DNA of 63,887 nucleotides, filler included, from Olpidium bornovanus S191 (GCA_017911155.1; 32 parts of 32 records of this genome joined end to end with filler, not necessarily neighbours in it), one strand, 5' to 3'. Shown: positions 22,064 to 23,175, counted from the whole stretch's first letter. Translations and numbers: made by a program. The notes: generated by a model not told the origin, from the letters alone.

Positions 22064-23175
22064 CATGAACTCGGGGCGGGCACGATGGTGTCGTGCTCCT
22101 TGGTGAAGACGGTTGGCGAAGGCGTCGTGCGCCTTGCCGGACAATCGCCTTCGCACAATCGCGACGGACGCCGGTGCGCTCGTCGAGGGTTGGCCGCCAA
22201 TGCCGTTTTTTTTTTCCCGTGCGCCGTTTTTTTTTTTTTTTTTTTGTCCTCTGCCGTCTGCGTCTCCTCCCAGTTTAACCCGGCTCCGGCTCCGGCTCCG
22301 ATTGCAGCTCCGGCTGACGCCTTTGCGGCTGCGCGCGATCTGCCGCCGCACGGTCGTCAGCCGCGCGAGCGCGTCGTAGTAGACGTCGGCCGTGACGCGC
22401 CGCGTCGGTTGACGTCGAAGCACGTTTGCCGGCTCGCGCGCGCCGGGGTCGACGGCGCAGGTGTTTCGCGCGGCCGCAAACACCTCGCCGGTGCGGAGGA
22501 TCCACCGGCGGCGCCCGCAGCGAACGCGGCCTGGTGTCGCCGAGGATCTCGGGGAGGCCACTTCGAACCGAAACGGGCGCCCCGCGCTGCCGCACGTTGG
22601 TGGTCAAACTGATGCTCCCACGTGCGGAGCGTCGAGTCGTGCCGCAGGCTGAACGGGGAGCGCCGCGCCTTTTCATTTTGCAGACCGGAAGGTGGCGCGT
22701 TCACGGCGTGGTTTTGGACCTGGTCCCGCGGAACCGCAGCAGCGGGTCCCTGGTGTAGACGCCGCAGGGCAGGTCGCCTTCGGGGCCGGAAAAATATGCA
22801 CTTGTGTGCTCAGTTACACCGCGCCCGTTTCGAATGTCGCCGGCCGCGTCCCCCAATCGCGAGCGTTCGGGGTACGGAACCGTCGGCGCGGTGTCCCGAC
22901 CCTTGAGCTCGAACCCTCGGCTGTTGCCGCGCTCGCAGTTCGTCTGGGCCGATGTGCAGTTGCCGACACTCACCTTGACGCTTGCCTGCTGCCCTTCGGT
23001 CGGCATCTCGGCGTATCTCCGCCGCTTATTCCGGGAGGCCGCTGAGCGAGTGCAGCGTGCCGTGTCGACGCACGTCTTTTCGGGACGCTTGACAAGCAAA
23101 CGAACTTGTCGCGCGGGTACCCTGAACGGCACCTTGCGCCCGTTGTCCTCATTCGCCAACGCCGTCCTTGACATG
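22064..23175 (-). pseudogene. Degenerate Fanzor2/TnpB-like (IS607-type) RuvC nuclease, frameshifted and truncated at both contig ends
   Basis: Collinear motifs across frames: RDKFV; YAEMPTEGQQASVKVSVGNCTSAQTNCERGNSRGFELKGRD (cf. ETP...R..A.......A.SNL..GN...F.LKFRS); LRHDSTL; RuvC-I CAVDPGARE (Asp codon 22448-22450); helix ALARLTTVRRQIARSRK..RRRLSGKAHDAFANR; then TKEHDTIV.PEFM (cf. H...AN.L...YD.I.LP.F). Confidence 0.62.

Follow-up and report, generated by a model that had tools for sequence, protein, structure and literature searches.

Fanzors and the "pro-Fanzor" TnpBs are defined by a DPG signature at the first RuvC motif (RuvC-I) together with a relocated glutamate of the second (RuvC-II), and a published pattern for Fanzors takes the form DPG-x(120,160)-E-x6-CxxC... 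(NAR 2023). Both Fanzor types occur in fungi. Saito et al. (2023) described Fanzor1 (Fz1) as "highly spread in fungi" and Fanzor2 (Fz2) as "found broadly in fungi," reported 42 loci in one chytrid genome, that of Spizellomyces punctatus, and noted the larger REC domain of Fanzor1 proteins (PMC10432273). Here, we compare with these systems a short contig of the fungus Olpidium bornovanus S191 (GCA_017911155.1). It occupies positions 22064-23175 of the window, the whole 63,887-nucleotide (nt) stretch of DNA that was analyzed, in which 32 parts of 32 records of this genome are joined end to end with filler. From its sequence, we put at about 0.8 the probability that the minus strand of this piece is a real Fanzor fragment in an advanced state of decay, one matching a Fanzor2 profile. 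It very probably represents the first two-thirds of a Fanzor gene, in broken form.

Such a copy is to be expected, as earlier work describes the family as widespread among fungi and giant viruses. A preliminary description of the locus had treated Fanzor2 as unusual in fungi; given the statement of Saito et al. quoted above, this premise is wrong. The same description had proposed a frame-broken minus-strand relic of a DPG-type TnpB/Fanzor nuclease, a proposal that profile chaining supports. It had also named DPG at RuvC-I and Pro in place of the RuvC-II Glu (...Y.xI..PxF) as marks of the family, and both are seen in the Fanzors fetched here and in the literature.

Fanzor profiles and two colinear blocks

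Reference Fanzors were gathered independently of the window. The motif [DE]L[HQ]WKT[IA]x[YH]L, taken from published supplementary Fanzor sequences, was converted into an IUPAC DNA pattern and used to scan IMG/VR, which returned 24 loci, mostly in giant-virus metagenome-assembled genomes (MAGs); an earlier, over-specific LHWKT DNA pattern had given no matches. These loci yielded 12 full-length open reading frames (ORFs) of 379 to 654 amino acids (aa), all 12 with DPG 55 to 70 aa upstream of LHWKT and with D, P, G, and R invariant at RuvC-I. A search with the alignment of these 12 sequences (A2) added a further 120, every one of which has DPG and nearly every one LP(D/E)F; both a 12-sequence (A2) and a 132-sequence profile were used. 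We assign the family to Fanzor2 because A2 matches ApmFz2 (mimivirus L79, PDB 9b0l) over its full length (E 2.8e-81) and because a MerR+Resolvase serine recombinase (the TnpA of IS607) adjoins two reference members, L094 and L104. A2 matched canonical TnpBs far more weakly, and in the Protein Data Bank (PDB) it found no Fanzor1 chain at E <= 1. A canonical TnpB set was assembled stepwise: E. coli InsQ led to a plasmid TnpB linked to IS607, and this in turn to 70 viral TnpBs in IMG/VR. All 70 carry D-(L/V/I/F)-G with the canonical Glu, and none has DPG.

Two segments of the piece are recognized by these real Fanzor profiles, and they are the N-terminal motif and the RuvC-I call of the preliminary description (all frames given here are frames of the minus strand). 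The N-terminal Fanzor motif block lies at 22902-23033 in frame 1, where EMP...SAQTNCERGNSRGFELK aligns with profile nodes 199 to 242, whose consensus is ...gaik..c....SaisN.k.gNik.F.l. Its ungapped profile score was 27.3 bits, compared with a mean of 11.1 (standard deviation [SD] 1.4) and a maximum of 18.1 for 1,000 shuffles and a maximum of 14.2 for 176 real GC-rich windows. HMMER with the 12-sequence profile gave 8.9 bits for frame-1 residues 27 to 91, spanning EMP...TNCERGNSRGFELK, a value reached by none of 300 shuffles (maximum, 3.3 bits), and hhalign placed the stretch at the homologous columns (P 0.01). By inference, the block would correspond to the junction of the REC and WED domains.

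The RuvC-I block, at 22436-22486 in frame 2, reads ...RNTCAVDPGAR where the profile has ...iisLDPGvR, with the putative catalytic Asp at 22448-22450. The DPG-containing core VDPGAR (22436-22453) aligns with the invariant D, P, G, and R columns of the 12 Fanzors. This block scored 20.7 bits, with shuffles averaging 11.5 and reaching at most 19.2 and with a maximum of 15.6 among 176 control windows. HMMER gave the RuvC-I piece 1.4 bits, second after the N-terminal stretch, and hhalign aligned LDPGVR at the homologous columns (P 0.044).

Open pieces were searched separately by the standard tools, and chaining was done on the DNA with a purpose-written DNA-to-profile dynamic program that matches codon by codon in any frame, preserves order, and charges a fixed penalty of 8 bits for each jump. 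With the 12-sequence profile, the minus strand chained to 59.0 bits, compared with 34.5 bits for the plus strand, 31.1 bits for the reversed profile, and 29.1 and 25.4 bits for reversed DNA. In 2,500 shuffles with the A-rich tract (22206-22256) kept in place, the mean was 33.6 (SD 3.7) and the maximum 48.4, so that none reached 59.0 (rough Gumbel P of 8e-5). In real sequence, 176 strand-windows of a Mycolicibacterium plasmid of 65.6% GC averaged 29.3 bits with a maximum of 42.3, and 24 TnpB-free GC-rich phage windows reached at most 43.6. Masking of the A-rich tract left 52.2 bits on the minus strand, and block order matters, as only 2 of 200 block-permuted profiles reached 59.0. The 132-sequence profile gave 52.4 bits (shuffles, 34.0 +/- 4.3; 0/400 reach it). 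On the piece, the canonical TnpB profile (70 sequences) produced no chain signal (z -0.6), and profiles of the LP(E/D)F and IS607-linked Fanzor subgroups scored alike (z 4.2 each). The best path runs through a weak segment at 23077-23136 in frame 0 (9.5 bits, profile nodes 25 to 44), the N-terminal block, the RuvC-I block, the A-rich tract, a three-residue HWR, and TKEHDTIV.

Composition points to the same frames. Third-position GC is highest in precisely the frames of the two strong blocks: the GC fractions at codon positions 1, 2, and 3 are 0.55, 0.58, and 0.81 for frame 1 at 22902-23094, and 0.71, 0.67, and 0.83 for frame 2 at 22373-22561. These phases were recorded before any Fanzor profile had been made. 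We favor a real relic because the N-terminal and RuvC-I blocks are separate, colinear, consistent in frame with third-position GC, and specific to the Fanzor profile.

The third block is fainter. At the RuvC-II position the reference Fanzors read LHWKT..YL..NYD.I(L/V)(L/I)P(E/D)F, and several of them carry ...NYD.I(L/V)(L/I)PEF.... The corresponding region of the piece, 22064-22129 at the contig edge, holds HDAFANRL (frame 2), TKEHDTIV (frame 0), and PEFM (frame 2), so that two frame changes within ~45 nt are needed to read it. Its frameshift-tolerant score of 24.6 to 36.6 bits, ending at 22067, has a shuffle P of 0.002. The H...A..L / HDTIV / PEF block of the preliminary description is nevertheless weak, since 4 to 7 of 176 real GC-rich windows (2 to 4%) score as high. 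hhalign found nothing significant for the frame-0 pieces with HDTIV and HDSTL. The literature pattern puts the relocated Glu 120 to 160 aa past DPG, that is, at or beyond the contig end (NAR 2023), and with the contig stopping at 22064, the sites of this Glu, of the zinc finger and RuvC-III, of the 3' omegaRNA region, and of the element ends and any TnpA all fall past its edge.

Decayed gene, chance resemblance, or live gene

The standard database searches were blank. Pfam, NCBIfam, and PHROGs, queried at E <= 10 with all long open pieces from both strands, returned no TnpB or OrfB and only chance matches with E >= 0.014. The Pfam blank carries no weight, because the contig stops before the PF07282 zinc ribbon; intact reference members match only this C-terminal family in Pfam, sometimes PF12323 weakly, and PF01385 almost never. 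Rfam gave 0 matches on the piece. When the two main pieces were run with phmmer against a PDB copy that includes ISDra2 TnpB and mimivirus Fanzor2 L79, the only match was vaccinia Rpo22 (E 0.11), which we judge to be chance. A word search with the RuvC-I piece found none, and none of eight ORFs was present in an exact look-up of a 15-billion-sequence collection.

The ESM Atlas provided leads only. It placed the minus-strand piece 22064-22561 at 0.96 to clusters of "hypothetical protein" sequences of 130 to 200 aa, mostly from Mucoromycota, with no TnpB family named, and left the frame-1 ORF unrecognized at 0.78. These Mucoromycota clusters could be similar Fanzor debris or a mere compositional likeness; phmmer with the same piece finds no relative.

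It is also important to set out what weighs against a Fanzor origin. No standard search was significant alone (HMMER, 8.9 bits; hhalign probabilities, 4% and 1.2%), and similarity to the family profile beyond short motifs is significant by the custom frameshift-tolerant score only, HMMER and hhalign each being weak alone. The chain score is self-devised and was run on a piece chosen beforehand for its motifs, which makes its P values post hoc. A phmmer search with the 166-aa RuvC-I piece against 1.84 billion representative proteins gave 0 matches at E <= 0.001, and no related locus was found in bacterial and archaeal genomes, IMG/VR, or JGI metagenomes when both pieces were queried. Real Fanzors have a conserved F/T/Y and an IG after DPGxR, and the piece lacks both, as it lacks HWKT in register, which is invariant or nearly so in real Fanzors; the score of the RuvC-II block is equaled by 2 to 4% of the real GC-rich windows. 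Spacers from the N-terminal motif to DPG and from DPG to RuvC-II are ~40 to 70 aa longer than in the references. Moreover, the references are all from giant viruses (GVMAG) or unlabelled metagenomes, and the viral loci are mostly of far lower GC (15 to 54%).

Part of this evidence bears on chance resemblance, in which GC-rich noncoding DNA or an unrelated gene would supply motifs through its Arg/Ala/Gly-rich six-frame translations. The piece is 1,112 nt long with 66% GC, a CpG observed/expected ratio of 1.39, and an excess of A over T on its minus strand. Open stretches of 100 to 180 codons are present in all six frames, a length that composition alone predicts; the longest is 182 aa, and as dinucleotide shuffles give longer ones (mean longest, 239), these stretches are not evidence of coding. 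Three-base periodicity is only marginal. DPG alone has a chance P of 0.28 per piece and [LVI]DPG.R one of 0.007, all database-scale searches were blank, and the piece was picked out of a very large scan. The RuvC-II block, HDSTL, and RDKFV do not rise above real-sequence controls. The two strong blocks do: each lies far above 1,000 shuffles and 176 GC-matched real windows, and they share a strand, the correct order, and the frames of highest third-position GC. The full chain, in addition, scores higher than all 2,500 shuffles, the plus strand, and the controls with reversed DNA or a reversed profile, and only the Fanzor profile yields this signal, canonical TnpB giving none. Taken together, we consider chance very unlikely.

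Alternatively, the locus might be a live, highly divergent Fanzor gene whose frame changes are spliceosomal introns, indel errors of a short, low-quality contig, or both. Eukaryotic Fanzor genes can contain introns. The strong third-position GC bias that persists in the two best blocks would suit a live gene, as would frame 2, which has no stop between 22603 and the contig edge, and some of the frame changes fall within C or A runs prone to sequencing error. The remaining features do not fit. A stop codon at 22701-22703 closes the frame-1 open stretch that carries the N-terminal motif, which breaks the reading frame between this block and RuvC-I, and another at 22604-22606 lies immediately 5' of the frame-2 open stretch (22064-22603) that carries RuvC-I. 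The GT..AG pairs that would join frame 1 to frame 2 all lack a good donor consensus, the two frame changes in ~45 nt at the RuvC-II block are incompatible with introns, the family-invariant HWKT and the F after DPGxR are gone, and only ~59 bits are left across roughly 350 codons. We read the piece as a relic because of its stops, its lack of a good donor site, its two close frame changes, its lost invariant residues, and its long spacers, and we regard a live gene as very improbable.

Whether an intron could account for the change of frame from the N-terminal block to RuvC-I was also considered on its own; this was rejected, since none of the candidates has a convincing donor site. A perfect donor-like site, AAG/GTGAGT, is present on the minus strand at 22966-22973, within the best-conserved N-terminal block. 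The alignment passes through it uninterrupted, and it is probably not used.

Identity as a canonical TnpB was rejected, as the piece has DPG, Pro at the Glu position, no Pfam or NCBIfam match, and a chain z of -0.6.

On the reading of a decayed Fanzor, the parent gene would have been a transposon-borne, omegaRNA-guided RuvC endonuclease of the TnpB type, of eukaryotes or giant viruses. By analogy with what has been shown for the family, an intact copy would bind an omegaRNA from the 3' end of the element and cut guide-matching DNA beside a target-adjacent motif (TAM). What appears to survive is the REC/WED-junction motif, the RuvC-I LDPGxR strand with its Asp, a basic helical region, and a faint block of the NYD.I..PEF type, spread over at least three frames, split by stop codons, and interrupted by the A-rich tract. 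The copy in the window would be incapable of guided cutting. The high third-position GC of the surviving frames suggests that the gene resided for a long time in a GC-rich genome before it decayed.

The locus itself is of little weight, being a dead copy of a known family. It does flag the genome as a present or past holder of Fanzors, and an assembly-wide search could yield intact nucleases and omegaRNAs. It also illustrates that relics without the C-terminal zinc ribbon are invisible to Pfam, NCBIfam, and phmmer at the scale of a billion sequences, and that they can be recovered by a family-specific profile with frameshift-tolerant chaining. A more specific idea, which we hold to be speculative and on balance unlikely, is that the piece belongs to a GC-adapted, fungus-resident lineage of the giant-virus-like LP(E/D)F Fanzor2 subgroup, in which Pro occupies the former RuvC-II position, with intact omegaRNA-bearing copies elsewhere in the genome. 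If true, a virus-type Fanzor would have resided for long in an early-diverging fungus, undergoing codon amelioration there, and a new compact nuclease would become available for testing.

Remaining motifs, repeats, and reference loci

The eight motif strings listed in the preliminary description can all be read from the minus strand, with frames and order as stated there, and no single ORF covers all of them. In addition to EMP (23001-23009, frame 1), TNCERGNSRGFELKGRD (22893-22943, frame 1), and CAVDPGARE (22433-22459, frame 2, with the Asp codon at 22448-22450), they include HDAFANR (22109-22129, frame 2), TKEHDTIV (22081-22104, frame 0), and PEFM (22064-22075, frame 2). The other two fared poorly as Fanzor motifs. 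RDKFV (23099-23113, frame 2) appears in no profile alignment, and the chain prefers the weak frame-0 segment there. HDSTL (22627-22641, frame 0) has no profile support, with an hhalign P of 0.46 and a position outside the best chain; it might be the I.YD strand that precedes RuvC-I.

An Arg-rich, helix-like stretch, ...ALARLTTVRRQIARSRKG..S.NR..., follows at 22277-22387 in frame 2, 21 to 57 residues after the RuvC-I Asp. It scored 4.0 bits against nodes 198 to 231 of the canonical TnpB profile, which 2 of 300 DNA shuffles reach, and the spacing from the Asp to the RKG Gly is 43 residues in the piece compared with 41 in the canonical profile (2 of 3,000 residue shuffles were as good and colinear). 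Its 3' part is encoded by a (GAGCCG)6 tandem hexamer at 22280-22315. From sequence of such low complexity, this stretch can be called a basic helix only weakly.

Farther along is the A-rich tract (A19, then A10) at 22206-22256, which encodes a Lys run in every frame and appears on the plus strand as T19 at 22227-22245. It falls at the position of a Lys-rich helix of the Fanzor profile (nodes 368 to 384) and contributes 17.9 bits to the chain, again with low complexity. It may have been expanded by slippage from a remnant, or it may be an insertion of unrelated origin. Both the A19+A10 tract and the (GAGCCG)6 repeat are unusual for DNA of 66% GC, and as both lie within the Fanzor basic-helix region, they may be slippage products of Lys/Arg codon runs.

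HWR, at 22194-22202 in frame 1, scored 11.3 bits, mainly from its Trp. These three residues possibly derive from the invariant LHWKT and could be chance; relative to the NYD.I..PEF-like block, they are placed ~74 nt too far upstream.

Several observations concern the reference loci themselves. The MerR-HTH+Resolvase ORFs, at L094:444-1058 (minus strand) and L104:11963-12694 (plus strand), are neighbors of Fanzor ORFs that belong to the IG.MS subgroup; no such neighbor accompanies L089, L093, and L102, the Fanzors of LP(E/D)F type that were examined. The Fanzor of L089 adjoins a RING-finger ORF and that of L093 an A32-like ATPase. In one giant-virus MAG, a 646-aa Fanzor is immediately preceded by a 642-aa ORF with an HNH_3 endonuclease domain (L083:4907-6832, minus strand). 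The 1.15-Mb viral contig IMGVR_UViG_3300024991_000079 carries at least four copies of Fanzors of the I(I/L)G.(F/M)S type (L086, L091, L096, and L099), with L086 and L096 almost identical across RuvC-I to RuvC-II. Finally, a short Fanzor fragment, ...DDLHWKTANYLCSPVRYDRLEF..., is found at four sites of the giant-virus IMG/VR record GVMAG-M-3300021958-28 (L085:51-79, L090:3410-3438, L090:9319-9347, and L095:10709-10737), open for 35 to 66 codons only; 5.9 kb separate two of the sites, which are inverted relative to each other. The fragments appear to be truncated Fanzor remnants that serve as, or lie within, repeats.

Comparison with known systems

With the canonical TnpBs of IS200/IS605 and IS607, such as ISDra2 TnpB and InsQ, the piece shares the order of N-terminal motif, RuvC-I, basic helix, and RuvC-II, and the Arg-rich helix gives the faint 4-bit match described above. 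Direct comparison of the IS607 TnpB with the piece gave a BLASTP E of 0.49 and an hhalign probability of 0.3%, with alignments out of homologous register.

The Fanzor1 proteins of fungi, represented by SpuFz1 of Spizellomyces punctatus, have the DPG RuvC-I signature and the relocated RuvC-II Glu, as Fanzors do generally. On grounds of host range, Fanzor1 would be an equally plausible parent, since it is abundant in early-diverging fungi.

Compared with Fanzor2, represented by ApmFz2 L79 and the GVMAG members (loci L083 to L104), the copy in the window is spread over at least three frames with stops and has no in-register HWKT and none of the F/T/Y...IG hairpin residues. It also has longer spacers, the A-rich tract, and 66% GC compared with 15 to 54% in the viral loci, and it ends before the relocated Glu, the zinc finger, and RuvC-III, with no IS607 TnpA or element ends on the contig. 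What it shares with Fanzor2 is DPG with the following Arg at RuvC-I, a basic helix after it, and the N-terminal SA.sN.k.gN...F.l motif, of which the L79 version is ...TNYIERHIKKF.IK; it further has a Y/H-D-x-I-V-x-P-E-F block resembling that of the LP(E/D)F subgroup. Among the Fanzor2-type and canonical TnpB references used, the closest profile appears to be that of Fanzor2, the mimivirus L79/IS607-linked type.

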